Source of the DNA: Octopus bimaculoides
Lineage: Eukaryota
Length of the DNA stretch: 64,000 bases
Reading direction: 5' to 3'
NCBI RefSeq assembly: GCF_001194135.2
Contig: NC_069001.1
Location: forward strand, 33,113,158 to 33,177,157
Both the position numbers and the translations under genes were made by a program. Below the pieces are notes generated by a model. That model was not told the origin of the DNA, did no database searches, and worked only from the letters and a program-made list of their open reading frames with translations. Shown piece after piece: positions 1-64,000 of this stretch; the first letter of the stretch is position 1, and each line of letters opens with the position of its first letter.

Positions 1-3000
1 ACGAACGTAACTACGTAGGTAAGTTCGTTCGTTCTTTCATTCGTTCGTTCTTTCTTTCGTTAGGTCGTTCGTTAATTCGTTCGTTCTTATTTACGTAGGT
101 ACGTTCGATCTTTAATTCGTTCGATTGTTCTGTCGTACGTTCGTTCGTACGTACTTACGTTCTTTCGTTATTTCTTACCTGCGTACGTAGGTTCGTTCAT
201 TCAATCGTTCGTACGTACGTACGTTCGTACGTACGTACGTTCGTTCTTTCATTCGTTCGTACATACGTACGTAGGTTCGTTCGTTCTTTCATTCCTTCGT
301 ACGTACGTTCGTTCGTTCGGTCGTAAATACGTACGTTCGTTTATTCGTTTTTCGTTCGTTCTTTCGTTCTTACGTACGTACGTACGTATGTTTGTTCAGT
401 AGTGCGTTCGTTCGTTCATTCATTCATTCGTTCGTTCGTTCATACGTTCTTTCGTTATTTCCTAGCTACGTACGTAAGCACGTTCGTTCGTTCCTTCCTT
501 CGTTCGTATGTTCGTTTGTTCCTTCGCTCGTTCGTACGTATATACGTACGTACTTTCGATTGTACGTTCGTTCGTTCAATCGTTCTTTTGTTCGTACGTT
601 CGTTCGTTTGTTCTTTTGTTCGTTGGTTGGTCCATCCCTCCATTCGTACGTACGTACGTTCGTTCAGTTGTACCTACGAACGTATGTGCGTACGTTCGTT
701 CGTTTGTTCGTACGAACGTACGTACGCACATATGTTCGTTCGTTCGTACGAACATAACTACGTACGTACGTAAGTTCCTTCGTTCGCTCTTTCGGTCTTT
801 CGTTCATTCGTACGTACGTACGTGCGTACGATCGTTCGTTATTTCGTTCGTTCTTACGTAAGTACGTTCGATCTTGAATTCGTTCGATTATTCGTTCGTA
901 TGTACATACGTATGTTCGTTCGTACGTTCGTACGAACGTTCTTTCGTTATTTCTTCGCTGCGTACGTACGTTCGTACGTACGTACGTACGTACGTTCTTT
1001 CGTTATTCTTCCCTGCGTACGTACGTTCGTTCGTTCGTACGTACGTACGTTCGTTCGTTCGTTATTTCCTTCCTGCGTACGTACGTACGTTCTTTCCTTC
1101 AATCGTTCGTACGTACCTACGTGTATATGTACGTTCGTTCGTTCGTACTTACGTACATACGTTCGTTCGTTCGTACGTACGTTCATTCGATTGTTCGTTC
1201 ATACGTATGTTCGTTCGTACGTACGTACGTTCTTCCGTTATTTCCTACCTACGTAATACGTAGGTACGTTCCATCGTTCGTACGTACGTACGATGTTTCG
1301 TTAATTCCTGCCTACGTAATACGTACGTACATTCGTTCGTACGTACGTTCGTTCGTACGTTCTTGCGGTATTTTCTGCCTACGTACGTATGTACGTTCGT
1401 TCGTACGTACTTACGTTCTTTCTTTATTTCTTACCTGCGTACGTAGGTTCGTTCCTTCAATCGTTCGTACGTACGTACGTTCGTTCGTTCATACGTACGT
1501 TTGTTCGTACGTAAGTTCGTTCGTTCGTACGTTCGTTCGTTCGTACGTTCGTTCGTTTCTTCGTCCCTACGTACGTACGTTCGTTCGTACCTACTTACGT
1601 TCTTTCGTTATTTCTTACCTGCGTACGTACGTTCGTTCGATGAATCGTTCGTACGTACGTATAAATATACGTTCGTTCGTACTTACGAACGTACGTTCGT
1701 TCTTTCATTAGTTCGTGCATACGTACGTACATTCGTTCGATCGTTCATACGTACGTACGTACGTAAGTTCGTTCGTTCGTCCATACGCACATACGTAAGT
1801 ACGTTCGTTCCTTCATTCGTACGTTTGTACGTTCGTTTGTTCGTTCGTTCCTTCCTACGTACGTTCGTTCGTTCGTTCGTTCCTTCCTACGTACGTTCGT
1901 TCGTTCGTTCGTTCGGTCGTAATTACGTACGTACGTCTATTTGTTTGTTTGTTCGATCGTTTGTTCGTACGCACGTTCGTTCGTACGTTCGATCGTTCGT
2001 ACGTACGTACGTTTTTTGTTCTTTCCTGCCTACGTAAAACGTACGTACGTTCGTTCGTTCGTTCGTTCTTTCATACGTACGTTCGTTCGTTCGGTCGTAA
2101 TTACATACGTTCGTTTATTCGTTTGTTCGTTCGTTCGTTCGTTTTTACGTACGTACGTACGTATGATCGTTCGTTCATTCGTTCGATCGTTCATTCATTC
2201 GTTCGTTCGTACGTTCTTTCGTTATTTCCTAGCTACGTACGTACACACTTTCGTTCGTTCCTTCGTTCGTTTGTACGTTCGTTTGTTCCTTCGTTCGCTC
2301 GTACGTACGTTTGCACGTATGTACTTTCGATTATACGTTCGTTCGTTCAATCATTCTTTCGTTCGTACGTTTGTTCGTTCTTTTGTCCTTTCGTTCGTTC
2401 GTTCGTACGTAAGCTCATACGATCGTTCGTAAGTTCGTTCGTTCATACTTACGAAAGTACGACCGTTCTTTAATTCGTTCGATTGTTCGTTCGTACGTAC
2501 GTACGTTCGTTCGTTGGTTCGCACGTACGTACGTTCTTTCGTTATTTCCTTCCTGCGTACGTATGTCTCGTTCCTTCAATCGATCGTACGTACGTGTATA
2601 TGTACGTTCGTACATACATACGTTCGTTAATTCGTTCATACGTACGTTCGTTCGTTTGTATGTTGGTTCTTTCGTATGTACGTACGATCTTTCGTTAATT
2701 CCTGCCTACGTAATACGTTCATATGTACGAGCGAATGAGAGAACGACCGAACGTACGTACGTACAAACGAACCAACGTACGAACGAACGAACGTACGTAT
2801 GAACGAATTAACAAACGTACGTACGTACGAACGAATTTACGTACGTACGTATCAACGATCGAACGAACGTACGTACGTATGTACGATGGAATGAAAGAAC
2901 GAACGTACGTACGTATTACGTAGGCAGGAAATAACGAAAGAAAATACGTACGTACGTATTACGTAGGCAGGAAATAACGAAAGAACGTACGTAATTACGA

Positions 3001-6000
3001 TCGAACGAACGTACGAATGAACGAACGTACGAACGAACGAACGTACGAACCAACGAACGTACGTATGAACGACCGCACGAACGTACGTACGTACGAACGA
3101 GCGTAATTAAGTAAGTACGAACGGGCGTACATATATACGAAGTACATATACACGAACATACATATATACGTACGTACGTACGAACGATTAAAGGAACGAA
3201 CGTACGTACGCAGGAAGGAAATAACGAAATAACGTACGTGTGAACGAAGGAACTTACGTACGTATGAACGATCGAACGAACGTACGTACGTATATACGAA
3301 CGAATGAAGGAACAAACGTACGAACGTAAGTACAAAAAACGTACATATATACTTACGTACGAACTACTGAACGAACGATCGTACGTACGCCGGTAAGAAA
3401 TAACGAAAGAACGTAAGTACGTACGAACGAACGTACGTACGAACGAACGTACTTACGAACGAACGTACGTACGTATTACGTAGGCAGGAATTAACGAAAA
3501 ATCGTGCGTACGTACGAACGAAGAAACGTACGAACTTACGTACGTAAGTAAGAACGAACGAACGCACGCACTCATTACGTAGGCAGGAAATAACGAAAGA
3601 ACGTACGTACAAAAGAACCAACGTACCTCTGAACGAATTAACGAACGTACGTATGTACGAACGAACTTACGTACGTACGTACGTATGGCCGATCGAACGA
3701 ACGTACGTACGTATGTACGAACGAATGAAAGAACGAACCAACGAACATACGTACCAATGTACGTACGAACGTACGTACGAACTTACGTACGAACGAACGT
3801 ACTTACGAACGAACGTACGTACGTATTACGTAGACTGGAATTAATGAATGATCGTACGTACGAACGAAGAAACGAACGAACTTACGTACGTACGTAAGAA
3901 AGAACGAACGAACGTACGTATGAACGAATTAACGAACGTACGTACGTATGAACGATCGAACGAATGTACGTACGTATTACGGACGCAGGAATTAACGAAA
4001 GAACGTACGTAATTACGATCGAACGAACGTACGAATGAACGAACGTACGAACGAACGAACGTACGAACCAACGAACGTACGTATGAACGACCGAACGAAC
4101 GTACGTACGTACGAACGAACGAACGTAATTACGTAAGTACGAACGGGCGTACATATATACGAACGTACATATATACGAACATACATATATACGTACGTAC
4201 GTACGAACGATTGAAGGAACGAACGTACGTACGCAGGAAGTAAATAACGAAATAACGTACGTGCGAACGAAGGAACTTACTTACGTACGTATGAACGATC
4301 GAACAAACGTACGTACGTATATACGAACGAATGAAGGAACGAACGTACGAACGTAAGTACAAACGAACGTACATATATACGTACGTACGAACTACTGAAC
4401 GAACGATCGTACGTACGCCGGTAAGAAATAACGAAAGAACGTAAGTACGTACGAACGAACGTACGTACGTACGTAGGCGAGAAATAACGAAAGAACGAAC
4501 GAACGAATATACGGACGAACGTACGTATGAACGAACGTACTTACGAACGAACGTACTTACGAACGAACGTACTTACGAACGAACGTACGTACGTATTACG
4601 TAGGCAGGAATTAACGAAAGATCGTGCGTACGTACGAACGAAGAAACGTACGAACTTACGTACGTACGTAAGTAAGAACGAACGAACGTACGTACGCATT
4701 ACGTAGGCAGGAAATAACGAAAGAACGTACGTACAAACGAACCAACGTACCTATGAACGAATTAACGAAATTACGTCCGTACGAACGAACTTACGTACCT
4801 ACGTACGTACGTATGACCGATCGAACGAACGTACATATGTACGTAAGTAAGAAAGAATGAACATACGTGCGTTTTACGTAAGCAGGAAATAACGAAAGAA
4901 CGTACGTACGTACGGACGAACAAATGTACGTACGCAGGTAAGAAATAACGAAAGAACGTAAGTACGTACGAACGAACGTATGAACGAACGTACGTACGTA
5001 CGTAGGCAACAAATAACGAAAGAACGAACGAACGAACATACGGACGAACGTACGTACGTACGAACGAAGAATTGAACGAACGTACGTACGTAAGTACGAA
5101 CGAACGAACGAATGTACGTACGTATTACGTAGGCAGGAATAAACGAAAGATCGTACGTAAGTTAATTCGAACGTACATATGATCGAATTAACGAACGTAC
5201 GTACGTACGAACGAACTTACGTACGTACGTAAGGAAGAAAGAACGAAAGTACGTACGTATTACGTAGGCCGGAAATGACGAAAGAACATACGTACGTACA
5301 AACGAACGAACGTACGAACGAACAAACGTACGTATGAACGAATTAACGAACGTACGTACGTATGTACGAACGAATAAAAGAACGAACGTACGTACGTATT
5401 ACGTAGGCAGGAAATAAAGAAAGAACGTACGTTCGTACGAATGAAGAATTGAACGAACGTACGTACGTAAGTACGAAAGAACGAGCGTACGTACGTATTA
5501 CGTAGGCAGGAAATAACGAAAGAACGTACGAACAAACGAACGAACGTACGAACGAACGAACGTACGTATTACGTACGAACGGACATACGAACGTACGTAC
5601 GTACGTATTACGTAGTCAAGAAATAACGAAAGAACGTACGTACAAAGGAATCAGCGTACGAACGAACGAACGTACGTACGTATGTAGGCAAGAAATAACA
5701 AAAGAACGAACGAACGAACATACGTACGAACGTACGTACGAACGAACGTACATACGAACGAAGGTACATACGTATTATGTAGGCAGGAATTAACAAAAGA
5801 TCGTGCGTACGTACGAACGAAGAAACGTACGAACTTACGTACGTACGTAAGTAAGAACGAACGAACGTACGTATGCATTACGTAGGCAGGAAATAACGAA
5901 AGAACGTACGTACAAACGAACGAACGNNNNNNNNNNNNNNNNNNNNNNNNNNNNNNNNNNNNNNNNNNNNNNNNNNNNNNNNNNNNNNNNNNNNNNNNNN

Positions 6001-9000
6001 NNNNNNNNNNNNNNNNNNNNNNNNNNGTACATATACACGTACGTACGTACGAACGATTGAAGGAACGAACGTACGTTCACAGGAAGGAAATAATGAAAGA
6101 ACGTACGTAGACAGGAAATAACGAACAAACGTACGTACGCAAGAAATAAAGAAAGAACGTACGTACGTATATAGGCACGAACGTACGTACGTAGGCAGGA
6201 AATAACGAAAGAGCATACGTACATAAAAAGGAACGAACGAACATACGGACGGACGTATGAATGTTCGAACTAATGAAAGAACGTAAGTACGAACGAACGT
6301 GTATATATATACGTACGTACGAACGTACATACGTACGCAGGCAAGAAATAACGAATGAACGTACGAACGAACAATCGAACTAATTAAAGAACGAACGTAC
6401 TTACGTAAGTAAGAACGAACGATCGAATGTATGTACGTACGAACGAACAAACGAAAAACGTACGTACTTACGACCGAACGTACGTAGGAAGGAACAAACG
6501 AACGTACAAACGTACGAATGAAGGAACGAACGTACTTACGTACGTACCACCGAACGAACTTACGTACGTATGTATGAACGTACGTACGTATGTACGGACT
6601 AATGAAAGAACGAACGTAAGTACGTACGAACGAACGTACGTATTACGTAGGCAGGAAATAACGAAAGATCGTACGTACGAATGAACCAACGAAAGTACGA
6701 ACGAACATACATATACACGTACGTACGTACGAACGATTGAAGGAAGGAAATAACGTACGTACGCAGGAAGGAAATAACGAAAGTACGTACGTACGAACGA
6801 ACGTATTTACGTACGTACGAACGAACGTACGTGCGTACTTACGAATGCACGAAAGAACGAACGAACTTACGTACGTACGTAGTTACGTTCGTACGAGCGA
6901 ACGGCCATACGTGCGTACGTACGTTCGTACGAACAAACGTACGTACATACGTACGTAGGAACGACTGAACGAATGTACGTACGTACGAATGGACGATCGA
7001 ACCATCGAACGAACATACGTACGAACGAACGAACGTAGAATCGAAAGTACGTACGTACATACGAACGAAGGAACAAACAAACAAACGAACGAACGATCGT
7101 GCGTACGTAGGTAGGAAATAACAAAAGAACGTACGTATGAACGAACGAACGAACATACGTACGTAAGAACGAACGAACGAAAAACGAATAAACGAACGTA
7201 AAATTACTACCGAACGAATGAACGTACGAAGGAACGAACGAACGTACGTACGTATTACGTAGGGAGGAAAGAACGAAAGAGCGTACGAACGACCAAAAGT
7301 ACGTAAGAACGTATGAACGAACGTACGTATGGACGAACAAACGAACGAACATACAAACGAATAAACGTACTTACGACCGAACGAACGAATGAATGAACGC
7401 TCGTAGGAAGGAACGAAAGAACAAACGAACGTACGAATTAAGGAACGAACGTACTTACGTACGTACGGACTGACGAACGAACGAACGTACGTATGTACGT
7501 ATGAACGATCGAACGAACGTACGTACATATGTACGAACTAATGAAAGAATGAACGTACGTACGTAAGTACGAACGAACTTACATATATACGTACGTACGA
7601 ACGATTCAACGAACGAACGTATGTATGCAGGTAAGAAATAACGTAAGTACGTACGAACGAAAGTAAGTACGTATGAACGAACGTACGTACGTAGGAAGGA
7701 AATTACAAAAGAACGGACGTACGAACGATCGTACGTACGAACGAACGTACGTACGTATTACGTAGGCAGGAATTAACGAAAGAACGTACGTAGGTACTAA
7801 CGAAGAAACGACCGAACGTAAGTACGAACGTACGTATGTATTACGTAGGCAGGAAATGACGAAAGATCATTCGTATTTACGAACGAACGTACGTATGAAC
7901 GAAAGAACGAACGTACGTACGTAAGAACGAGCGAACGTACTTACGTAAGTACGAATGAACGTACATATATACGTACGTACGTACGAACGATTGAATGAAC
8001 GAACGTACGTACGCATGAAGGAAATAACGAAAGAACGTACGTACGCAGGGAAGAAATAACGAAAGTACGTACGTATGAACGAACATACGTACGTACGTAC
8101 GAACGAACAATCGAACGGATTCAAGATCGAACGTACTTATGCAAGTAAGAACGAACGAAATAACGAACGATCGTACGTACGTACTCACGTACGATTGAAC
8201 GAAAGACCGAGCGAACGTACGTACGTACGTGCGAACCAACGAACGTACGTACGTACGAACGAATTAAAGAACGAACGTACTTACCTAAGTATGAACGAAC
8301 GAATTAACGGACGATCGTACGTGCGTACGTACGAATGAGCGAAAGAATGAACGAACTTACGTACGTACGTAGTTACGTTCGTACTAGCGAAGGAACATAC
8401 GTAAGTACGTACGTTCGTACGAACGAACGTACGTACATACGTACGTAGGAAAGACTGAACGAACGTACGTACATACGAATGGACGAACGAATCAACGAAA
8501 GAACGATCGATCGAACGAACATACGTACGAACAAACGAACAAAATAACGAAAGAACGATTAAACGAACGAACGTACAATCGAAAGTACGTACGTACATAC
8601 GTACGTACGAACGAAACAAGCAACAAACGAAAGTAGTGCGTACGTACGTAGGAAGGAAATAACGAAAGAACGTACAAACGAACGACCAAACATACGTATG
8701 TACGTAAGAAAGAACGAACAAACGAATAAATGAACGTACGTAATTACGACCGAACGAACGTACGTACGAAGGAACATAAGTACGAACGAACGTAAATATA
8801 TACGTACGAACGATTCAAGGAACGAACAACGTACGCAGGTAATAAATAACGAAAGAACGTAAGTACGTACGAACGAACGTACGTACGTAGACAGGAAATA
8901 ACGAAAGAACGGATGTACGAACGTACGTACGAAAGAACGTACGTATGTATTACGTAGGCAGGAATTAACGAAAGAACGTACGTACGTAAGTAAGTAAGAA

Positions 9001-12000
9001 AGACCGAACGAACGAATGTACGTACGCAAGTAACAAATAACGAAAGAACGTAAGTACGTACAGACGAACGTACGTATGCAGGAAATGACGAAAGAACGTA
9101 CGAACGAACGTACTTACGAACCAACGTACGTACGTATTACGTAGGCAGGAATTACCGAAAGTTCGTCCCAACGAAGAAACGAACGAACTTACGTACTACG
9201 TAAGAACGAACGAACCTACGTACAAACGAATGAACGAACGTATAAACGAACAAACGAACGTAAGTACGAACGAATGTACATATACACGTACGTACTTACG
9301 AACGATTGAAGCAACGAATGTACGTACGCAGGAAGGAAATAACGAAAGAACGTACTACGTACGAACGAACGTACGTACACAGGGAAGAAATAACGATAAA
9401 ACGTACGAACGTGCGAACGAACATACGTACATACGTACGAACGAACAATCGAACGAATTCAAGATCGAACGTACTTACGTAAGTAAGAACGAACGAAATA
9501 ACAAACGATCGTACGTACGTACGAATGAACAAAAGACCGACCGAACGAATTCAAGAACGAACGTACTTACGCAAGTATGAACGAACGAATTAACGAACCA
9601 TCATACGTGCGTACGTACGAGTGAACGAAAGAACTAAAGTACGAAAGAAAGAACGAACAAACTTACGTACGTACATAGTTACGTTCGTACGAACGAACGA
9701 CCATACGTGCGTACGTACGTTCGTACGAACAAACGAACGAACGTACGTACATACGTATGTAGGAACGACTGAACGAACGTACGAATGGACGAACGAACGA
9801 TCGAACGAACATACGTACGAACCAACGAACGAAAGAACGAATGAACGTACGAACGAAAGAACGATTGAACGAACGAACATACAATCGAAAGAACGTACGT
9901 ACATACGTACGTAAGAACGAACGAAGTAACAAACGAACGTACGAACGAACAAAGGAACGAACGAACGAACGTGCGTACGAACGTAGGTAGGAAATAACGA
10001 AAGAACGTACGAACGAACGAACGAATGAATGAATGAACGAACGAAAGAATGAACGAACGAACAAACATACGTAAGTACGTACGTAAAAACGAACGAAAGA
10101 ACGAACAAACGAATAAACGAACGTACGTAATTACGGCCGAACGAACGAACGTACCTACGTATTACGTAGTCAGGAAAGAACGAAAGAACGTCCGAAGGAA
10201 CGAATGTACGTATGAACGAACAAAAGTTCGTGCGTACGAACAAAAGTTCGTGCGTACGAACAAACGAACGAATAAACGTTGGTAGGAACGAACGAACGAA
10301 CAAACAAACGTACAAATGAAGGAACGAACGTACTTACGTACGTATGTACGGACGAACGAACGGACTTACGTACGTATGTACGTATGAACGATCAAACGAA
10401 CGTACGCACGTATGTAAGAACTAATGAAAGAACGAACGTACGTAAGTACGAATGAACATACATATATACGTACGTACGAACGATTCAAGGAACGAACGTA
10501 CGTACGCAGGTAATAAATAACGAAAGAACGTAAGTACTACGAACGAACTACGTACGTAGGCAGGAAATAACGAAAGAACGGATTACGAAAGATCGTACGT
10601 ACGAACGTACATACGAAAGAACGTACGTACGTATTACGTAGGCAGGAATTAACGAAAGAACGTACGTACGTACGAACGAAGAAACGAACGAACTTACGTA
10701 CGTACGTAAGAACGAACGAACGTATAAACGAACGAACGAACGTACATATACACGTACGTACGTAAGTAAGAAAGACCGAACGAACGTACGTAAGTAAGTA
10801 AGAAAGACCGAACGAACGAACGTACGTACGCAGGTAAGAAATAACGAAAGAACGTAAGTACGTACAGACGAACGTACGTATGCAGGAAATGACGAAAGAA
10901 CGTACGAATGAACGTACTTACGAACGAACGTACGTACGTAAGTACGAACGAACGTACATATACACGTACGTACGAACAATTCAAAGAACGAACTACGTAC
11001 ACAGTTAAGAAATAACGAAAGAACGTAAGTACGTACGAACGAACGTACGTACGTAGGCAGGAAATAACGAAAGAACAGACGTACGAATAAACGTACGTAA
11101 GAACGAACGTACGTACGAACAAACGTACGAACGTATTACGTAGGCACGTACGCAAGTACGTGCGAACGAACGAACGAACGAACGAACGTACATATACACG
11201 TACGTACGTACGATCGATTAAACGAAAGAAACGTACGTACGTACGTAAGAACGAACGAACAAACGAATAAACGAACGTACGTAATAACGACCGAACGAAC
11301 GAACGTACGTACGTACGTATTACGTAGGCAGAAAAGAACGAAAGAACGTACGTATGTACGAACGAACGAACGTACGAAAGAACGAAAGTAGGTATGAACG
11401 AACGTACGTACGTACGAACAAACGAACTAACAAGCAAACGAATAAACGTACGTACGTACTTACGACCGAACGAACGAAAGAACGAACGTACGAATAAGGT
11501 ACGAACGTACTTACGTACGTACGTACGAACGAACGAAGTTAAGTACGTACGTATGTATGAACGAACGAACGAACGTACGTACATATGTACGAACTAATGA
11601 AAGAACGAACGTACGTAAGTACGAACGAACGTACATATATACGTACGTACGAACGATTCAACGAACGAACGTACTTAAGTACGAACGAACGAACGAACGT
11701 ACGTACGTACGCAAGTACGAACGAACGTACGTACGTACGCAAGTACGAACGAACGTACGTACGTACGCAAGTACGAACGAACGTACGTACGTATTACGAA
11801 GGAAGGAAATAACGAAAGAACGTACGTACTTACGAACGAACGTACGAACGTATGAACCAACGTGCGTGCGAACGAACGTACGAACGAACGAACTTACGTA
11901 TGATCGAACAAACAAACGAACGAACGAACGTACATATATACGTACATACGTACGAACGATTGAAGGAACAAACGTACGTTCGAACGACCGAACTTACGTA

Positions 12001-15000
12001 CGTACGTCCATATGAACGATCGAACGAACGTACGTACGCAGGTAAGAGATAACGAAAGGACGTAAGTACGTACGAACGAACGTACGTACGTACGTAGGCA
12101 GGAAATAACGAAAGAACGTACGAACGAACGTACGTACGTATTACGTAGGCAGGAATTAACGAAAGAACGTACGTACGTAAGAACGAAGAATTGAACGAAC
12201 GTACGTACGTAAGTACGAACGAACGAACGAACGTACGTACGTATAACGTAGGCAGGAAATAACGAAAGAACGTACGTACTTACGATCGAACGAACGTACG
12301 AACGAATGAGCGTACGTATGAACGACCGAACGTACGTACGTATATACGAACGAATGAAACAGCGAACGCACGTACGTATTACGTAGGCAGGAAATAAAGA
12401 AAGAAAGTACGTACGTACGAACGAACCAACGTACGAACGAACTAACGTACGTATGAACGAATTAACGAACGTATGTACATATACACGTACGTAGGATCGA
12501 TTGAAGGAACGAAACGTACGTACGCAGGAAGGAAATAACGAGAGAGCGTACGTACGTGTGAACCAACGAACGAACGAATTAAAGAACGATCGTACTTTCG
12601 TAAGTATGAACGAATATATACGTATGTACGAACGATTCAACGAACGAACGTACGTACGCAGGTAAGAAGTAACGAAAGAACGTAAGTGTGAACGAACGAA
12701 CGTACGAACGAACGAGCGTGCGTATGAACGAACGAACGTAGGTACTATGAACGAACGAACGTACCTACGTTAGTACGGACAAACGTACATATATACGAAC
12801 GTACATATATACGAACATACATATATACGTACGTACGTACGAAAGATTGAAGGAACGAACGTACGTACGCAGGAAGGAAATAACGAAAGAACGTACGTGC
12901 GAACGATGGAACTTACGTACGTACGTATGAACGATCGAACGAACGTACGTACGTAAGTACAAACGAACGTACATATATACGTACGTAAGTACGATCGTTT
13001 GAACAACGAACGTACGTACGCAGGTAAGAAATAACGAAAGAACGTAAGTACGTCCGAACGAACGTACGTATGTACGTAGGCAGGAAATAACAAAAGAACG
13101 TACGAACGAACATACGTACGAAAGAACGTACGAACAAGCGTACGTACGAACGAACGTATGTACGAACAAACGTACGTACGTGTTACGTAGGCAGGAATTA
13201 ACGAAAGATCGTACGTAAATATGAACGAAGAGACGAACGAACTTACGTATGTACGTAAGTAAGAACGAACGTACGTACGTACGTATTACATAGGCACGAA
13301 AGAACGTACGTACGAAAGAACCAACGTACGAACGAACGGACTAAAGAACAACAGAACGAACAAACGTACGAACGAAAGAACGATTGAACGAACGAACGTA
13401 CAATCGAAAGTACGTACGTGCATACGTACGTTCGAGCGAACGAAGGAACAAACGAATGTAAAAACGAACGAATGAACGAACGAAAGTGCGTACGTACATA
13501 GGTAGGAAAAAAGGAATGAATGAATGATCGAACGAACGAACAAACGATCATACGTACGTAAGTACGTAAAAACGAACGAACAAACAAACGAATAAACGAA
13601 AGTACCTCATTACAACCGAACGAAGGAACTACGTATGGAGGAACGAACGAATGAACGCACGTACGTTTTACGTAGGCAGGACAGAACGAAAAAACGTAAG
13701 TACGTACGAACGATCGAACGTACGAACGAACGAAAGTACGTATGAACGAACGAACGTACGTACGTACGAACAAACGATCGAACAAACAAACAAATAAACG
13801 TACGTACGTAATTACGACCGAACGAACGAACGTACATACGTATTACGTAGAGAGGAAATAACGAAAGAACGTACGTACTTACGGACGAACGAATATACGA
13901 ACGTACGAACGAACGAACGTACGAACGAACGAGCGTACGAACGAACGAACGTACTATGAACGAAGGAACGTACGTATGTACGACCGATTGACGGAACCAA
14001 CGTACGTACGCAGGAAGGAAATTGCGAAAGAACGTACGTACGAACGAACGAACTTACGTACGTACGTATGAATGATCGAACTAACGTACGTACGTGTGTA
14101 CGAACGAATGAAAGAACGAACGGACGTACGTAAGTACTTATATACGTACGTACGTATGAACGATTGAACAAACGAACGTACGTACGCAGGTAAGAAATAA
14201 GGAACGTACGTACGTACGAACGAACGTACGTACGAACGAACGTACGTAGTACGTAGGCAGGAAATATCGAAACAACGTACGAAAGAACGTACGTACGAAC
14301 GAACCAACGTACGAACTAACGAACGTACGTATGAACGAACGTACGTACGTACGAACGAACGTACGTACGTAAGTACGAACGAACGTACATATACAGGTAT
14401 GTACGTACGAACGAACTTACGTACGTATCACAAAGGAAGGAAATAACGAAAGAACGTACGTACTTACGAACGAACGTACGAACGTACGAACGAACGTACG
14501 AACGAACGTGCGTACGATCGAACGTGCGTACGAACGAACGTACGAACGAAGGAACTTACGTAAGATCGAACAAACGAACGAACGAACGTACTTACGTAAG
14601 TACAAACGAACGTACGTACGCAGGGAAGAGATAACGAAAGAACGTAAGTACGTACGGACGAACGTACGTACGTACGTAGGCAGGAAATAACGAAAGAACG
14701 TACGAATGTACGTACGTATTACATAGGCAGGAATTAACGAAAGAACGTACGTACGAACGAACAAACGATCGAACGAACGTACGTACGTGCAAACGAACGA
14801 ACGTACGTACGTAACGACAAACGAACGAACATATATAGGTACGTACGTACGAACGATTGAACGAACGATCGTACGTACGCAGGTAAGAAATAACGAAAGA
14901 TCGTACGAACGAACGTACGTACGTACGTAGGCAGGAATTAACGAAAGATCGTACGAACGAACGTACGAACGAACGTACGAACGAACGTACGAACAAACGT

Positions 15001-16492
15001 ACGTACGTATTACGTAGGCAGGAATTAACGAAAGAACGTACGTACGTACAAACGAACCAACGATCGAACGAACGTACGTACGTATGTACGAACGAATGAA
15101 AGAACGAACGTACGTACGTAAGTACAAACGAATGAACATATATACGTACGTACGTACGAACGATTGAACGAACGATCGTACGTACGCATATAATAAATAA
15201 CGAAAGAAATTCAGAACATACAATCGAACGTACGTACGTACGTAGGCAGGAAATAGCGAAAGATCGTACGCACAAACGAACGAAGAAACGAACGTACTTA
15301 CGTACATACATAAGTACGGACGTACGAACATACGTACGTACGTAAGTACGGACGTACGAACATACGTACGTATTACGTAGGCAGGAAATAACGAAATACA
15401 TATGAACGAACCAACGTACGAACGAACGAACGACCGAACTAAGGAACGAACGTACGAAGGAAGGAATGAACGAACAAACGAACGTACAAACGTACGAATG
15501 AAGGAACGAACTTAATTACGTACGTACGTACGGACGAACGAACTTACGTACGTACGTTCGTAAGAACGATCGAACTAACGATCGAACTAACGAACGGACG
15601 TATGTACGAATTAATGATAGACCGAACGTACGTAAGTACCAACGAACGTACGTACGTGCGTAGACAGGAAATAACGAAAGAACGGATGTACGAACGATCG
15701 TACGTACGAAAGAACGTACGTACGAACGAACGTACGTACATATTATGTAGGAAGGAATTAACGAAAGAGCGTACGTACGTAAGAACGAAGAATTGAACGA
15801 ACGTACGTACGTAAGAACGAACGAACGAACGTACGTACGTATTACGTAGGCAGGAAATATCGAAAGAACGTACGTACTTACGATCGAACGAACGTACGTA
15901 TGAACAACCGAACGAACATACGTACGTACGAATGAACGAACGTAATTACGTAAGTACGAACGGGGGAACATATATACGAACATACATATATACGAACATA
16001 CATGTATACGTACGTACGTAAGAACGATTGAAGGAACGAACGTACGTACGCAGGAAGGAAATAACGAGATAACATAGTGCGAAAGAAGGAACTTACTTAC
16101 GTATGTATGAACGATCGAACGAACGTACGTACGTATATACGAACGAATGAAAGAACGAACGTACGAACGAAAGTACAAACGATCGTATATATATACGTAC
16201 GTACGTACGTACGAACGACTGAACGAACGAACGTACGTACGCAGGTAAGAAATAACGAAAGAACGTAAGTACGTACGAACGAACGTAAGTACGTACGAAC
16301 GAACGTAAGTACGTACGAACGAAAGTAAGTACGTAGGCAAGAAATAACGAAAGAACGAACGAAGGAACATACGTACGAACGAACGTACTTACGAACGAAC
16401 GTACGTACCTATTACGTAGGCAGGAATTAACAAAAGATCGTACGTACGTACGAACGAAGAAACGTACGAACTTACGTACGTACGTAAGTAAA
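1..16492. repeat. CpG-rich satellite/minisatellite array of CGTA/CGAA (TACG/TTCG) tetramers with a recurrent GCAGGAAATAACGAAAGAAC box; contains a 100-N gap at 5927-6026
   Basis: Continuous degenerate (ACGT)n/(ACGA)n for 16.5 kb. T-rich strand on + from 1 to ~2720, A-rich strand on + from ~2721 to 16492. Ends at the 100-N gap 16493-16592. Confidence 0.97.
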
Positions 16493-16720: not shown

Positions 16721-17797
16721 TATGGCAGTTGTAGTGTCCCTCATCAAAGCATGAGAGTAACTGCAGCTATTGAGAAACCTGCATTATGTGAAGAGAATAT
16801 AATAGAGACAAGATTAACCTAAAATAACATGCATCAAGATGAAACAATCCAATGTGTAAATACTTGGTTATAAGAAGACATTACTAGAAAGATGTAAGGT
16901 TTTGATGGTAGCCACAAACTTCTCTGAATCCACACTGCAGGATGCTCCTTCAAAGACAAAACTGTTCTAAAGATTCCATTCGAACTGATCAGCAGAAAAG
17001 ATCTAAATATGTCATTGGAGGAAGTATTTCAATTTGTGATATCCAGCTTCTTGTCTCTTTGACTGCCATTTCATTGAAGTTCCTTAGAAGCTCTTACAAG
17101 ATATACATGACACAAACAGACAAAATTTTAAGAAATACGACATAAAGAATTATTCCTGATGCTACTATGGATAAAAAAAAGTTACGAAGAAAGTGCTTCA
17201 CCATCGGTGTGCAAGAAAGATTGCTGAGGTTAGGAAGAAAAGATCTCTCACTGTAAGAGAGAAAAACCACTTCAAAAATATCTGCAGAAACAAGCGCAAA
17301 GTCTTATTTAAAGCATTTACATGTTGAGTGGGATGCATTTCAAGGCCTATATCCATTTACATATATCAACAAATCCATAATCTCATACAATGATATTTGA
17401 TCACCATCTCTGTGATCCAAATAGGTTCACAACCTCTTCCTTTCATTAATCTGTCAGCATCCTTTGCTGATAATTTGTCTACAGTTAATTATGGCCACAA
17501 GAAACTCAATCCTTTCAGTAATGACCGACACAGGATGTCAAAGCCACCAGGTATTGAAGTAATCCACTGAATTAGAATCAAATGAAGTTAATTAACATTG
17601 CCAACAACAAGAGAATTGGTGCTGCCATATTAAGATGCCTTGGGACATATTTCTACAATTCATAAAAGCAGCTTCGTACATCAATCTATCTGTATAAGCT
17701 TGATAAAGTGAAAAAGAAGGGTTTTTCTAGTGATTATTTTCCATTTTACTAACGATTAGATGTTTCCAAATTATCACACACACACACACACATATAT

Positions 17798-18279
17798 TGT
17801 TATGTATATCTATAATATAATGAAGGGAAAGAACTTACAATATTTTCCGAAGGTGGTGAGATAAACGTTTGTCAACGACCCTTTGGCAGAAGTGATTTTT
17901 CCAAGGATACATAGAGGGGACAAACAAGGAACATATAAGGTCAAATGTTGGTATGGATAACAAATACATATACGGGAAGTTAGCATCGTACGAGACAGGT
18001 AATCTCGTTTACTTACTATTACCAAGCGAGGCAGGTAATCTCGTACTTCCTGTTAAAAAGGGGAGTTGAGAAGACAGATGGAGCTTGGCACGGATGGTAC
18101 CAAAACCAGAGACGGAGCTGCATATGGGTCGGACCGTTCACCACCTACCTTTAAACAATTGAGGACTGGACATAATCTCAATATTTGAACATTAATTTCC
18201 CTGTTTGAACAATTTCTGTTGTTGCGATCAGAAGTTTACCCCCCTTTTTTTTTACATTAGAATTTGTCTGATCATAACA
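17798..18279 (+). repeat. 5' LTR (482 bp)
   Basis: 7-bp terminal inverted repeat TGTTATG/CATAACA. Internal 18-bp direct repeats at 17991-18008 and 18027-18044. TATA-like TTAAAAAG near 18052. Immediately followed by the PBS. Confidence 0.8.
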
Positions 18280-18282
18280 AAT

Positions 18283-18300
18283 TGGGGGCTCGTCCGGGAT
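18283..18300 (+). promoter_or_regulatory. Primer-binding site complementary to the 3' 18 nt of tRNA-Pro
   Basis: TGGGGGCTCGTCCGGGAT is the canonical tRNA-Pro PBS (includes the complement of CCA). Confidence 0.92.
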
Positions 18301-18339
18301 CCGAACCCGGGACCTCTCGCACCCCTAGACCAACGAGCC
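18283..18339 (-). pseudogene. Reverse-transcribed mature tRNA-Pro copy (CCA-tailed) lacking 18 nt of the D-arm 3' side and anticodon arm 5' side; not a functional tRNA gene
   Basis: Minus strand reads GGCTCGTTGGTCTAGGGGT|GCGAGAGGTCCCGGGTTCGGATCCCGGACGAGCCCCCA. This is the conserved eukaryotic tRNA-Pro with ATGATTCTCGCTTNGGGT removed. Confidence 0.9.
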
Positions 18340-18413
18340 TATTTCCGACATTATTAAGACTAAGGAGTAGTTTGTTTCAGAAGTTCACTCACCAAAGCCT
18401 GCTATTTTTGTTG

Positions 18414-18722
18414 CCTTTTATTTCAAAAGGGTTTGTCTCACTTGAGGGTGATAGGTCCACATTACGACCCATTACTATTTGGAGGGATACAGGCGCACTC
18501 CAGTCTCTAGTGTTGGAAGGTACTCTTCCTTTCTCGAAAGTGTCGTCTGCTAGTTCTGATGTTTTATTAGAGGGCATTAGTGGAATTTCAAGTGCACCTC
18601 TTCATTTTGTTGATTTGCAGTCAGATTTTGTGCCTGGTTTGGTGAAAGTTGGTGTTAAGAATACACTCCCAGTATCAGGTGTAGACTTGCTAATTGGAAA
18701 TGATTTAGCAGGGTCCAAGGTT
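18414..18722 (+). pseudogene. Gypsy-type retroviral aspartic protease (retropepsin) fragment
   Basis: PFISKGFVSL...IWRDTGALQSLVL...PLHFVDLQSDFVPGLVKVGV...GVDLLIGNDLAG. Contains the DTGA catalytic motif (18486-18497) and the LLGND-like C-terminal motif. No ATG start; gag, RT and IN are absent. Confidence 0.85.
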
Positions 18723-18849
18723 TTGTCTGATCGTAACAATATACATACAGACAGACAGATAGATAGATAAATAGATAGATAGATACACAGGTAGACATGT
18801 CTGCACATACACTGTCCCATATGATAGATTGGGGATAAATGAGAAGGAA

Positions 18850-19480
18850 AAACTTAGAAATAGTCCTAAAAAGAGGAAGCCAAATGGAGCTTATCTACAG
18901 AAAGCAACTGTGGTCTTAAAGGATGATTGAAACTGTTCAATGGAAAGATTATTAGTTGTTTTACAACAATAATCACAGGAGATTTAGAAAGATAATCATC
19001 TATAAAGGAAATATAGTAATAACATGGTAAACTTACAGGAACAGTAAAGCAGTTAAGTATTCAAAAACAACAAGGAGATATTTATCTAAATACATAATAT
19101 TATTCATAGATCATCAAATTAAAAGAAGAATACATCTTGAATAATTGGTATCAATTACTGAAATATTTGACAGATCTCAACTAACGGACATGAGATCAGT
19201 TATGAAAGTAATAGTGTGCATGAAATCAAAGAAAGATTAAGCAACGTTTGTGGTGCCACTGCTTTTTCTATTATAGCATATTTTCACTGACATTAAAACT
19301 AATGTTGTTATAATGATAAAGTTATCAGCTCTAGTTTTCTAGGGAAGAAAGACTGGGAAATTGAATGGAGAGAACAGCTAAAGACTTGAATGCTTCCAGA
19401 ATATGAAATTTAGTCATAGACTTTTTATAACCAACACTGACAGAGAGCAAATTCTAGGTCATAGTATTTAATCACTAAAA
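18850..19480 (+). mobile_element. Highly degenerate RTE-like LINE reverse transcriptase remnant
   Basis: Broken frames giving KYL..., HEIKERL... and LNAF... resemble RTE RT thumb-region motifs. Many stops and frameshifts. Confidence 0.35.
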
Positions 19481-19749
19481 ACATGGCTCAATAGTTAAAG
19501 AGTTCTTTTCTTAACAATGGAAGACACATGTATTGTACAAGAGCCAAGCTTTGGTCATTCTTCATTTTTGCAATAAACAATAATTCTTCCTAATTTTGAC
19601 ACAAGGTCAGCAATTTTAAGGGGTGGGGATAATCGATTACATTGACCCCAATATTCAACTGGTACTTATTTCATCAACCCCCAAAAGGATGAAACACAAG
19701 GGTAACCTCAGCAGAACAGTGGTACCATAATTAACCAAGGCAGAGAAAG

Positions 19750-20641: not shown

Positions 20642-20858
20642 CCTTTCTACTATAGGCACAAGGTCTGAAATTTGATGGGGTGGCAAGGCTAGTCGAGTAT
20701 ATTGACCTCAGTGCTCAACTGATACTTATTTCTTCCACCCCGAAAGGATGAAAGGCACAGTTGATCTTAGCAGAACTTGAACTCAAAACGTCAAACCAGG
20801 AGAAATGCTGCTAAGCATTTTGCTCGGCATGCTAACAATTCTGCCAGTTTGCTACTTT
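20641..20858 (-). mobile_element. tRNA-derived SINE, family A (~210 bp; core GACTTTGCCTTTCATCCTTTCGGGGTCGATAAAATAAGTACC)
   Basis: Many homologous copies in the window. Box-B-like GAGTTCAAATTC in the head, (TTA)n tail. Confidence 0.85.
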
Positions 20859-21814
20859 AATAATAATGATAAAAATAATGATGATGATAATAATAATAAT
20901 AATAATAATAATAGTCTGTCTCCTTTCCTTACAGTATATCATTGCTAATCATAAATAGCACTCATAGCAAAACATCCAACTTGCTGTTGCTTGAGGTCTC
21001 TTGGAGAGACTTGGAACATCTTGTATCAAACAAAGCAACAAAAACATAAAATGATAATAATAGCAACAGCAACAACAACAACAACAACAATAATAATAAC
21101 AACAACAACAGATAAAAGAAAAGATGACCATTAATATAAGAATAACAACAACAGAGCATTTATAGAGAATAAATGAATAAAATAGCAGAGACTGCAGTAA
21201 ATTTGGTGTCCAACCCTTTTGTTACCATTTTTCTATTGAAATACACTGCATTTGTTTCAATTAATTTTGAAAATAATGAAGAATTTAGTAAAATAGCTGT
21301 CATTATTAGACTGGCATTTGGAACAGAAGTTAACATGAAATTTTGAAAGAAGGTTTTTAACTAAGATCATTCTGAAGAAAGAAGTTTGTATCAAAGAACC
21401 ATGGGTATTCCCAGACAGGTTTGTATCAAAAGGGTTAAACTATTGGATGTCATGACCACATGGGAAAGAAAGATAACTGATTCCACATCAGATAAACTCA
21501 AGTTGTGAAGAGACAGGCCATGAGATATTTTGACATAGCTATTTCGACGTCATTGATTTGACTGATTTATTTGACATTAAGTATTCTAATGTCTCTCTCT
21601 CATTTTCTCCTTCCCTCTTTCTCTCTCTGTTTATGCGAGTGAGCATATTTATATTTATGTCTGAGAGGAAAATGCTGTCAATTGCAATGTCACTCTCCCT
21701 CTCTCTATCTGTATGCACATATTTCTGCTTGTCTTTTTTTATTTATTTGCTATTCTGGGCCATGCCCAAATCAAGGTGGACTTTTGGTATTGCCCTCACT
21801 GCACTCTTATTCTT

Positions 21815-22215
21815 TTCTTTTCTACTCTAGGCACAAGGCCTGGAATTTTGGGGGGAGGGAGCCAGTCGATTAGATCCCCCCAGTATGCAACTGGTACTTA
21901 AATTATCAACCCTGAATGGATGAAAGGCAAAGTCAACCTTGGTGGAATTTGAACTCAGAACGTAAAGACAGACGAAATACCACTAAGCATTTCACCTGGC
22001 GTCCTAACGTTTCTTTTCTACTCTAGGCACAAGAGGAGGCCAGTCGATTAGATTGACCTCAATATGCAACTGGTACTTAATCTATAGACCCCAAAAGGAT
22101 AAAAGGCAAAGTTGACCTTGGTGGAATTTAAACTCAGAACGTGAAGACAGACGAAATACTGTTAAACATTTCACCCAGTGTGCTAACATTTCTGTCAGCT
22201 CATTGCACTCTTTTG
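21815..22215 (-). mobile_element. Two tandem SINE family A copies
   Basis: Repeated ctactctaggcacaag...ggatgaaaggcaaagt...gaactcagaacgt motifs at ~200-bp spacing. Confidence 0.85.
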
Positions 22216-24812
22216 ACCGAGTTCTGTAGCCAGTGGAAAGAACCTTCTTGCATTCTGTTGTGCATTAGTGGTGAAAATGAGCAATTCTAAGTGTCATTAG
22301 ACCCAGTGTCTTCTGTTCAGAAGAACCTTCTGAAGAAGTTCCAAAAGTTCTTGGCCTGGTAGTCCAATTCAGAAGCATTGGCTGTTTGGGATAAACTTTA
22401 ATTATGGCCAAGTCTGAGTAGCCAGTAATTAAACAAGTTCTAGGTGTACCCAGGGTGGTGAGATTATGCAGCAAGTGTTCATAAAGCTAGTACAATGGAG
22501 TTATGCATGTGTGTATCTGTTTACCTCCAGTGTGTCACCCAAACAAGTTGAATGTCTAGTTAACCATATCAAATCGTCAGAGTCCAAACAGCCACACCCA
22601 ACCATCTCACTCCAGAAAAAAAAAAACAAACAAACAAACAAAATAGACATGGAAATTTAGATCTTTTTGTTTGCTTTTTTAGAATTATATATAAATTGAT
22701 ATGAAATTGTTAAAATTGAGACATTTTTTCATATTTAAAAAATTTTTTAAGGGGTAGTTGAAATTTGAATATTAAAAAAAAAAAAATTGATTTAAACTTT
22801 AAATTCAGGTCTGAAGACCACTTTTTCTATTACTTTTTTTTTAAAAGCCTTAAAAAAATTAATTCAAATTTTTTTTTAGGGAATTTCAAATTTATGAAAT
22901 TTTTCAATTTTGCCAGATTAAAAAATAAAAGAAAAAGACAAAAAAAAAAGAATCTGATTTTGGAACAATGGAAAAAAGGTAGAAATAAGAAATATTAAAA
23001 AATTCACATATCTGATGGGAAAAGATATTGCTGCTGCTCAACTGAAGCAGATGGACATTGTGTGTTTAATTAGTGGTCAAGTGGTGGAGAAATTAGTTTA
23101 AACTTTACAAAATAGTGAAGCAACCACTTCTACAGGGACAGTTCTAGATGGTTGATCTACCTGATAGAAATAGCAATTGATCTACCTTAATGAGAAATAG
23201 CAGTTGAACTGGCTCATTAGCAATCTTAATTATTTCAATGAAAACAATATAACAGAAAAATAATTAATTTTTTTTTTAATCAAAAACATTTTTGTTGTTG
23301 TTTGGCACTAGGTGAACTCTGACTGAGCCAACTTATGATCAAAAGCATTCCAACTGTGACCACCTCTATCTGTTTAGAAATACATCTAAAACTACAATAT
23401 TTAATGTGTCCTTTACAATTTTAAGACAAAAAAGAAATGGTGGGGTTGAACTGACATACAAATATAACATTGACTTTCCAGACAATGATGGCCCAGAGCC
23501 TCTTATGATCTGCACTAATTTATGAGCAGGAACTGCAGATTTATGCAGCTGCTGAACTAGTTTACCGAGCAGCCCTGTTTCACATTACCTGGCACAGTAC
23601 AGTGTTAATAAGCTTGTATCACTTATACTGATGTACAAGTACCTGTATTTCATTTAATTCTTGATTAACATCTGGCTCAGAAAAATCAGGAATTAGAAAA
23701 AGCTTTGGGAAGCAACGGTTCCAGAATATCAATGTTGTACCTATATTTGACTAGTATCTGCTCTATCTACCCACAAAATATGGAAGGTAAATGTTCACCT
23801 AATATTAATGACTTATTTGCCATAAGGGTGAACAGAAGTAAAAAACGGTACAAATAGTGAAAACAAGACAAAAAGAAAGAACTGATAGCATTTATCTATT
23901 TTATGCACTATTATATTACTGAATACTGGGTCATTGGATGTTTAGTTGTCACATGCCTTACTGCTTTTCAAAAGATATATTGTTATTCTTTAATCCCTGG
24001 CCAACTATGATTGTTAAAAATGTTCTAGCCATGATTATTCCGTTTTTTTAATTTCAGACGTTGTATATCCAGGACTACATTATGCAATGTGTCTTTTCTT
24101 TTTAGAAGATGCTGGGATGGGATTTGAAGGAGATTTTGCTACTATTTCTAGCAGGTCAAGCAACCACACAAAGTTTCCCTTCATTAAAATTTATTTATTA
24201 TGAAGACACTAAAAGGGATTAGTTCAATCCAAGGATGATCCATTTTGGGAATTTTTTCTGAAATTTGCCGAATGATATGTATAATAAAAAAAAGTGAGGG
24301 GAGCGGTAATTAAAAAATGATTTATTAATTACCGTCTACGTTGAGGCAAGATGGTTGTGAAATACATTTTATCACAAATAACCATTTTTTTCAAAAACAT
24401 CGTTTGGAATAAACATCTTTAAAAGTTTGTATATCATATAACAGTGACTTAAAATAAGAAAAAAGGAAGAAAAACAATAAAAATTTGTATAAACTAATGA
24501 ACATGATCAGTTTTGGCTTTGAAATTATTGATTTTGGAAATGAAGACTCAATTAGGTTCCCTAAAAGGCTGATCAATTCCTTAAGTCATAGGGCTTGTTT
24601 TAATAAGATCGACATTTGAAAATATGTGAACAAAATGTATATAAGTTTCCCCTTGAAATTATTACGAGGTTGCAAAACTGTACAATAATAGAAATTGTCA
24701 AATACCCAAAAAGGAATAAAATGCAAAACTGAAGCAAATCTGATGACAGAAAACATTTAAGATTAAGAAGAAAAAACAAACAAATAAGAACTAATAATAA
24801 TAATAACAATAA

Positions 24813-25043
24813 TGGTTTCAAATTTTGGCACAAAGCCAGCAATTTCAGGGGAGGGGCTAAGTTGGCTACATCGACCCCAGTGCTCAACTGGTAGTTATTT
24901 TATTGACCCTGAAAGGATGAAAGGCAAAATCAACCTTGGTGGAATTTGAACTCAGAATGTAAAGATGGATGAAATGCTGCTAAGCATTTTGCCCAGCTTG
25001 CTAACGATTCTGCCAGCTAACCACCGCCTAATAATAATAATAG

Positions 25044-25088
<45 letters not shown>

Positions 25089-26080
25089 TAATGGTTTCAA
25101 CTTTTAGGCACAAGGTCAGCAATTTTAGGGGGGAAGTAAGTTGATTTAATTGACCCCAGTGCTTAATTGGTTCTTATTCTATTGACCCCGAAAGGATGTA
25201 AGGCAAAGTCAACCATGGTGGAATTTCAACTCAGAACATAAGGAACATTTGAACTCAGAACAACAGCCATTTTGTCTGGTGTGCTAACAATCCTACCAGC
25301 TTGCTACCTTCCTTTCTATCATAGACACAAGGCCTGAAATTTGGGGGAAGGGGGCCAGTTGATTACACCACCCCAGTGTTTAACTGGTACTTAATTCATC
25401 GACCTTGAAAGGATGAAAGGCAAAGTCGACCTCGGTGGAATTTGAACACAGAATGTAAGGCTGCCTCTGAGTATTTTGTTCAGTGTGCTAATGGTTCAAC
25501 CAGTTCGTCGTCTTAATAATAATAATAACAACAACAACAATTGTTTCAAATTTTTAGCACAAGACCAGTAATTTAGAAAGGAGGGACAAATTTATAACAT
25601 CAACCTTGCCAGTACTTGACAGGAACTGAGAGCAGAAAGAAAAGACACTCAGCTGGGCTCAAATTTTAGCACAAAGCTAATAATTTTTTCTTGGGGAGAT
25701 GGGGATGAATCGATTATGTCAACCCCAGATACTTATTTTATTTTCTCCAAAAGAGCTAAAGACAAACTCAACCTCACAAGAAATTTGAACTCTGAACATA
25801 AATATGGATGAAATGCCACTAAGCACTTTGTCCAGCACGGTAAGGATTCCTACTATAGGCACAGGGCCTGAAATATTTTGGGGTGGAGGGAGGGGATAGT
25901 CGATTACATTGACCCCCACCCCCAACCCCATCAGTGCTCAACTGGTACTTGTTTCATCAAACTTGAAAGGATGAAAGGCAAAGTCGACCTTGGTGGAATT
26001 TGAACTCAAAGCGTAAAAGCAGACAAATGGCTTAGCAGCATTTTATTCAGCATGGTAATGATTCTGCCAGCTAGCCACCC

Positions 26081-26081
<1 letters not shown>
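24813..26081 (-). mobile_element. Head-to-tail cluster of ~5 SINE family A copies, mostly separated by (AAT)n
   Basis: Copies at about 24813-25030, 25093-25310, 25311-25515, 25665-25850 and 25845-26081, all in the same orientation. Confidence 0.85.

Positions 26082-26131
<50 letters not shown>
26082..26131. repeat. (AAT)n microsatellite
   Basis: Near-perfect trinucleotide run. Confidence 0.95.

Positions 26132-30330: not shown

Positions 30331-64000
<33,670 letters not shown>

Follow-up and report, generated by a model that had tools for sequence, protein, structure and literature searches.

In the normal cycle of reverse transcription, plus-strand synthesis starts from the polypurine tract, copies U3-R-U5 and the first 18 nt of the primer tRNA, and halts before m1A58. 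Ohshima and Okada are said to have proposed, in the early 1990s and partly on the basis of squid and octopus SINEs, a strong-stop-DNA model for the birth of tRNA-derived SINEs. On both tRNA-Pro and tRNA-Lys3, reverse transcriptase (RT) halts one base before m1A58 and continues if the methyl group is missing; it stops again at m5U(m)54, and in lentiviral genomes complementarity to the tRNA reaches position 55 (PMC8599865, PMC13191261). Depending on its 3' neighbour, m1A can lead to misincorporation as well as arrest (PMC4787781).

RT stops mainly before m1A58 and to a lesser degree at positions 55, 54, and 37, and an unmodified tRNA is copied to its 5' end; of these products, those ending at positions 58 to 54 are the only ones that can be used (PMC13191261). 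The tail of a read-through product blocks completion of the plus strand (PMC8599865). Because the long products are unusable, they would be expected to leave no progeny, or to be rescued by illegitimate transfer with loss of sequence beside the tRNA 5' end. Two further retroviral observations are cited in PMC12220202: a circular MLV DNA from 1986 in which reverse-transcribed tRNA lies next to an LTR end, and HITME (2006), in which 63-65 nt of tRNA inside a retroviral genome, together with a deletion, arose via RT template switching. A review of PBS mutations in mouse endogenous retroviruses is confined to the 18 nt of the PBS (PMC7472051).

Here we describe a locus in the window (the whole stretch of Octopus bimaculoides DNA that was analysed, 64 kb in length) at which the PBS of a Gypsy-type element runs on as the complement of tRNA-Pro to the first base of the tRNA. 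We consider it likely that this locus is the dead, integrated product of faulty reverse transcription by a tRNA-Pro-primed Ty3/Gypsy LTR retrotransposon.

Anatomy of the 941-bp element

The tRNA copy sits in a 941-bp Gypsy-type LTR retrotransposon remnant on the forward strand (17798-18738), which the first-pass annotation had missed. The remnant opens with a 482-bp 5' LTR (17798-18279) bounded by inverted termini (TGTTATG...CATAACA) and a 3-nt spacer, AAT, between the LTR end and the PBS (18280-18282; 2-6 nt in relatives, commonly (G)AAAT). The PBS and the tRNA copy (18283-18339) are followed by 65 nt that are either element leader or the stretch just upstream of the protease (18340-18404), by a retropepsin-like protease (PR) fragment (18405-18722), and, joined directly to PR, by the last 17 nt of the LTR (TTTGTCTGATCGTAACA; 18722-18738), which form the right end of the element. 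The right end matches 18263-18279 at 16 of 17 bases, with zero such matches expected by chance (100 shuffles); the two differ at one base only, where the right end has CG and the 5' copy has CA, against a family consensus of CGTAACA. PR is fused to this LTR remnant via a run of T (TTT microhomology). The element is flanked by an ATAT target-site duplication on the forward strand (17794-17797 and 18739-18742), which is weak evidence by itself because the flanks are low-complexity AT/CA microsatellite, namely (CA)n(TA)n at 17775-17797 and (GACA/GATA)n at 18739-18790.

The PR fragment is an intact open frame of ~106 codons with the motifs RDTGA and LIGNDLAGSKV; it keeps every invariant column of the PR alignment and is 50-61% identical to the PR of nine database proteins (P0001-P0009). 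A tblastn search of the window with the PR of one relative (L001) matched 18414-18725 (E = 2e-37). The Pfam RVP model matched two of the 10 aligned PR sequences, weakly, and there was no match of Pfam to the window ORF or of the PR alignment profile to PDB sequences.

No other coding domain was recovered: the window contains no gag, IN, RT, or RH anywhere (tblastn with the L001 domains matched PR only), there is no polypurine tract (PPT), with PR coding sequence abutting the LTR remnant, and self-BLAST of 17001-19500 against the 64 kb identified no second LTR or element copy. The 65-nt stretch gave chance matches only (blastn-short), none of them significant in the window or in 61 loci, and the sequence downstream of the relatives' PBS is too divergent for this stretch to be placed by alignment. 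Two full direct LTRs are not present, with only the last 17 nt of the second remaining; the locus is a truncated derivative and not an intact LTR retrotransposon. Both integrase-recognised termini are kept in the 941-bp unit.

Relatives of the element come from other genomes, with PR identities of 37-61%; scanning metagenomes with the PR alignment contributed 56 further loci. Full-element relatives have the layout LTR, PBS, gag (with a SCAN-like capsid domain), PR, IN (H2C2, rve), RT, RNase H, LTR, and in L001-L003 the domain order is gag(SCAN)-PR-IN(H2C2, rve)-RT-RNaseH. Integrase upstream of RT (PR-IN-RT-RH) is what we take to be the order of the Gmr1-like Gypsy clade. The window copy is 61% identical to L001 in PR but, as it retains only PR, its own domain order is not readable. 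The LTR start TGTTATG and end (C/G)(A/G)TAACA are common to L001-L003 and about 25 further relatives, and 4-bp target duplications were identified in L002 (TAAA) and L003 (TGTG). In L001, a gag zinc knuckle (CAYCKKKGHLMSEC; 9851-10090) is followed by a single in-frame stop, after which the frame continues into PR; this could reflect stop-codon read-through of pol or a mutation in that copy. In L003, gag and PR are apparently in different frames.

Elsewhere in the window, a tandem satellite of ~16.5 kb (23-16490) is made of ACGA/ACGT tetranucleotides, organised at higher order in periods of 20-36 nt and about 99-139 nt, and yields long spurious ORFs (e.g., FVRSYVRT...). A tRNA-derived SINE-like repeat with the core ...GAGTTCAAATTCCGCCGAGGTCGACTTTGCCTTTCATCC... 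on the minus strand is present in at least a dozen copies (20671-26085, 36000-36408, 45519-45879, 58967-59038, and 63541-63732), and another tRNA-like head is located on the minus strand at about 63731-63800; both are unrelated to tRNA-Pro. An ORF on the minus strand (44959-45357) resembles a phospholipase D catalytic (HKD-region) exon, and presumably the window is in or near a PLD gene. Runs of N (39351-39360, 44735-44744, about 52300-52548, and 61962-61971) are assembly gaps, several of exactly 10 and mostly within microsatellites.

A tRNA-Pro copy continuous with the primer-binding site

The PBS (TGGGGGCTCGTCCGGGAT; 18283-18300, forward strand) begins 3 nt after a genuine LTR end, matches tRNA-Pro's 3' end at 18 of 18 bases (positions 76-59, CCA included), and is identical to the MLV PBS quoted in PMC4587795. 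It is contiguous with 18301, the base opposite position 58, and with the complement of positions 57 to G1 minus 18 nt (18302-18339, forward strand), as judged from the alignment, the natural genes, and the direct repeats. The entire segment 18283-18339 (TGGGGGCTCGTCCGGGATCCGAACCCGGGACCTCTCGCACCCCTAGACCAACGAGCC) reads as mature tRNA-Pro, CCA included, in reverse complement; it keeps the register of the PBS, runs antisense to the element, and ends exactly at G1. Aligned to tRNA-Pro, 55 of the 57 bases are identical, with mismatches at T-loop positions 57 and 58 and one 18-nt gap; the match is not due to chance, and the tRNA-Pro pieces occur once within the 64-kb window. The base at 18301 is C, which reads as G58, where a faithful copy of A58 would be T; 18302 is also C and reads as G57. 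Both the run of tRNA-Pro complement past the PBS to G1 and the G58 at its first base had been reported in the first-pass annotation, and sequence and coordinates were confirmed here. Neither ARAGORN (window) nor Rfam (17500-19000) called a tRNA at 18283-18339, as expected from the loss of the anticodon arm and half of the D arm; because the anticodon is deleted, the isoacceptor of the copied tRNA-Pro is not readable. A SCARNA7 match (Rfam, 17500-19000) was discarded as a microsatellite artefact.

Natural genes for comparison were obtained by scanning a prokaryote genome collection for the tRNA-Pro 5' half, which returned 11 contigs, evidently eukaryotic contamination, carrying 18 tRNA-Pro genes (ARAGORN). 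The T-loop is TTCAAAT in 14 of these and TTCGAAT in four (L065:200, L068:136, L070:5, and L070:947), which bears out the proposal that G57 in the copy is a natural isodecoder variant. All 18 eukaryotic genes have A58, and none encodes CCA or has the 18-nt deletion. Compared with the TTCGAAT genes, the copy is identical at 56 of 57 bases; apart from the 18-nt deletion, its sole substitution is A to G at position 58. CCA is present in the copy and absent from the genes, which indicates that a mature tRNA, as opposed to a gene, served as the template. Eukaryote-type tRNA genes are densely clustered (up to 24 genes in 4.4 kb) in bacterial MAG contigs (L063, L065, L066, and L068) and in a SUP05 assembly (L070), and almost certainly represent host or other eukaryote contamination of these MAGs.

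A readable LTR end (...TAACA), a 2-6-nt spacer, and a PBS were identified in 29 relatives, and all 29 have a tRNA-Pro PBS. Relatives often extend 3-5 nt past the 18-nt PBS, with one variable base followed by bases complementary to positions 57-54/53. L001 has T opposite position 58, and L002 and L007 have A, in each case followed by CGAA; C is found there in L009 and L022 (followed by TGAAC) and in L047 (TGAA), and A in L026 and L032 (TGA). Across these eight relatives, which extend by at least 3 nt, the tally is one T, four A, and three C; in the window, the base is C, followed by CGAACCCGGG... The motif YGAA at +2 to +5 is present in 5 of 18 relatives from the first scan (P about 2e-7 if the loci were independent, which is only partly the case). 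A conserved flank around one unconstrained base is the pattern that would be left by a template base that is unable to pair, such as m1A.

The C at 18301 is therefore discussed here as a putative scar of m1A58, and we regard this attribution as very probable given that it is the sole substitution, that G58 is found in 0 of 18 natural genes, and that the corresponding base varies in relatives; these comparisons support the miscoding originally proposed for this position. It may also be that the C was inherited from a parent with an extended PBS (C+CGAA) and was not made in this event. In four relatives (L016 1328, L018 238, L050 963, and L023 56), the PBS is followed by TGAA or GAAC, but the 58 site is one base short or has an additional base, which could represent nucleotide skipping or insertion at m1A58, or chance. 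In L035 (206-245; PBS region ...GTCCGGGAATTTGTACCC), apparent complementarity to tRNA-Pro extends to ~position 51 with a faithful T opposite 58 and one mismatch, and may represent an intermediate read-through.

The 18-nt gap has five equivalent placements because GGGT flanks both of its ends, and the ambiguous block is ACCC at 18321-18324 (positions 38-35 or 20-16). The skip between two GGGT motifs thus stands as first described, but the endpoint lies somewhere within positions 35-38 and not exactly at position 37. The tRNAs for CCN codons are expected to carry m1G37. On tRNA-Lys3, HIV synthesis has been shown to stop at position 37 (PMC13191261). About 8-9 direct repeats of at least 4 nt are present in tRNA-Pro, and 2-3 of them involve positions 35-38, so that any microhomology-mediated deletion would have a ~30% likelihood of landing there. 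If all 4 nt of microhomology were used, RT must have copied G37 correctly; a stall before position 37 would have left only one base of homology on hand. Replication slippage after integration gives the same 18-nt-deleted sequence. A stall at m1G37 followed by a jump, also proposed in the first-pass annotation, is plausible, but with this ambiguous endpoint and likelihood of chance landing the evidence for it is weak, and we put it forward only tentatively, at somewhat less than an even chance, as what may have produced the deletion.

Origin of the locus

A tRNA that serves as template is represented by its complement in the newly made strand. Here that complement lies in the plus strand of the element directly after U5 and the PBS, from which it follows that plus-strand synthesis copied the tRNA. 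Read-through by RT of its own primer, as claimed in the first-pass annotation, is well supported by the antisense orientation of the copy, its contiguity and register with the PBS, the CCA, and the genuine LTR end. RT would have passed position 58, inserting C instead of T, and would then have copied the remaining tRNA to G1, skipping 18 nt between the two GGGT motifs. Rescue of the plus strand probably came about through illegitimate template switching, which is proposed to account both for the absence of gag right after the tRNA copy and for the fusion of PR to the last 17 nt of U5. One derailed cycle of reverse transcription would have given a short double-stranded DNA with both termini, and integrase would have inserted this 941-bp DNA with a 4-bp duplication, in agreement with the duplication length of the family. 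The loss of sequence predicted beside the tRNA 5' end is present, in that gag is missing and 65 nt separate G1 from PR. As the evidence comes from one locus, a single copy with no full-length parent, donor and acceptor sites of the two large deletions are not definable. A splice junction was also considered for the loss of gag and rejected, since acceptor-like sequence would not survive in a spliced template and no donor is definable.

It is unlikely that the read-through was real but that the scars and the large deletions are later genomic events, with G58 as a T-to-C point mutation, the 18-nt loss as GGGT slippage, and the losses of gag and of PR-to-LTR sequence as chromosomal deletions in a once full-length element. 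Such internal deletions would yield an identical sequence with its duplication preserved; the 4-nt direct repeats that flank the 18-nt deletion are a classic slippage substrate, and a PR/LTR junction with only TTT microhomology is typical also of end-joining. Later decay has occurred but is slight: the 5' LTR end carries a single CpG-to-CpA change, the PR frame is intact, and the 56 other tRNA positions, several CpGs included, are unchanged; the one changed position is 58, which has a chance of 1 in 57 if random. Relatives, moreover, independently show non-T bases opposite position 58. It would be unparsimonious to assume three separate rearrangements in 460 bp of a fragment with no other decay, and a 39-nt non-complementary tail should have kept a full-length element from finishing its plus strand (PMC8599865, PMC13191261). 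A full-length insertion followed by two genomic deletions is consequently less parsimonious than an origin in a single cycle, and conflicts with the replication block.

Inheritance of the tRNA segment as the leader of a host-specific, possibly non-autonomous subfamily, going back to one ancestral read-through, appears very unlikely. Families do inherit PBS extensions of 3-5 nt, but none of the 29 relatives has tRNA complement beyond position 53, whereas the window copy reaches G1, so that the whole-tRNA segment is not an ancestral leader of this group. The first-pass annotation had allowed for the possibility that intact family members all carry the 57-nt segment as a normal leader; this is not so in the 29 relatives from other genomes. 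ARAGORN, run on 60 loci as well as on the window, called no tRNA at the site, scans of viral_contigs found neither the tRNA-Pro 5' half nor a PBS with T-stem read-through, and the read-through pattern had 0 matches in genome_contigs. The tRNA-encoded N-terminal part of the window ORF is found in no protein of a 5.8-billion-sequence database, the nine matches there being to the PR part only (61-64% of the query), and the exact ORF has no other record in the contig collection. There is also no second copy in the 64 kb, and an element without a PPT and nearly all of its 3' LTR is not the product of normal replication of a like template.

We regard three further origins as highly improbable: a tRNA-Pro retropseudogene or SINE that landed by chance beside an LTR, recombination between the PBS and a gene for tRNA-Pro, and a template switch of the minus strand to a free tRNA (HITME type). 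The genome is rich in tRNA-derived SINEs, and both CCA-bearing tRNA retrocopies and cases of tRNA inserted into a retroviral genome have been described (PMC12220202). However, the copied tRNA has its 3' end at exactly the base where the PBS lies in 29 relatives; the segment lacks poly-A, a LINE tail, and its own duplication, occurs once in the window (where the SINEs are not Pro-like), and has its pol III B box hit at A58 and an A-B spacing 18 nt short; tRNA genes lack CCA, and gene flank would follow G1, yet PR starts within 65 nt; and a minus-strand switch would leave the tRNA in sense, whereas here it is antisense.

Faulty reverse transcription through the primer thus remains our preferred explanation of the locus. 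A more specific version of it, on which we place distinctly less confidence, would treat the 941-bp unit as a one-cycle integrate that records m1A58 misincorporation and an m1G37 stall and jump along with two illegitimate transfers, and would take post-PBS bases generally as a heritable readout of T-loop modification. What the data show directly is the anatomy of the sequence, the identity of the tRNA, the orientation and register of its copy, the absence of the segment from relatives, and the variability of the base opposite position 58; an origin of all the anomalies in one reverse-transcription cycle, and not partly in later genomic deletion, is inferred, as is a role of m1A58, and possibly of m1G37, in causing the scars.

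Comparison with known systems and significance

Primer read-through is a textbook failure of retroviral replication, and the locus suggests that such a product can reach a chromosome, with loss of most of the element. The first-pass annotation had further proposed a route by which LTR elements capture tRNA; this is unsupported because the copy, without gag, IN, RT, PPT, and nearly all of the 3' LTR, is dead and unable to propagate, and the locus shows no working route for either tRNA capture or the birth of SINEs.

The 29 relatives appear to carry two points known from lentiviruses over to Gypsy elements, namely that the base opposite A58 behaves as non-templated and that copying often ends at positions 54/53; both family patterns support m1A58 and T54 as stops in vivo. 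Post-PBS bases may therefore offer a cheap genomic proxy for tRNA modifications. If the base opposite m1A58 is indeed non-templated and copying does stop at T54, the post-PBS bases of LTR elements could be mined across genomes for tRNA modification in non-model animals. In our literature search we found no report of an integrated LTR retrotransposon with its cognate primer tRNA copied to the 5' end, or of the position-58 pattern in LTR retrotransposons.

With respect to the strong-stop-DNA model of SINE origin, the minus strand of the locus reads tRNA(+CCA)-ATT-U5-R, which is the junction postulated for a SINE ancestor. Signs of SINE activity are lacking at the locus: its B box is altered at A58, 18 nt are missing from the A-B spacing, and a single copy was seen.

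In the complementarity of lentivirus and spumavirus PBS regions to positions 55/54 (Fukuda et al., 2021, PMC8599865), the relatives are alike, with x+(C/T)GAA(C) extending to positions 57-54/53 as in HIV and SIV; they differ in being invertebrate-type Gypsy elements primed by tRNA-Pro, in which the base opposite position 58 is mostly not T. According to the account in PMC12220202, the 1986 MLV circle likewise kept an RT-copied primer tRNA beside an LTR end, but it was unintegrated and derived from a mutant virus with a spurious tRNA-Gly primer, whereas the window copy involves the cognate primer and PBS and is integrated. HITME, as described in the same source, involves non-primer tRNAs at an internal site, in contrast to the primer tRNA of the locus, which is in PBS register and antisense and hence points to plus-strand copying.

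The closest counterparts are HIV-1 P1-P5 and the products of M-MLV RT on tRNA-Pro, which represent the same reaction, with the main stop before m1A58 and minor stops at 55/54/37 (PMC13191261, PMC8599865); M-MLV has the same tRNA-Pro PBS as the window element. Aberrant retroviral products run to the tRNA 5' end if the stop fails, and their tail blocks strand transfer, as proposed here. The window copy differs from them in belonging to a Gypsy-type retrotransposon, in its internal tRNA deletion, and in the flanking deletions of the element. Furthermore, the retroviral products, which were obtained in vitro or in cell culture, have been called dead ends, whereas the product in the window is fixed in an animal chromosome. 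Each step proposed for the locus has a precedent in retroviruses in vitro or in cell culture, and it is the chromosomally integrated example that may be new.
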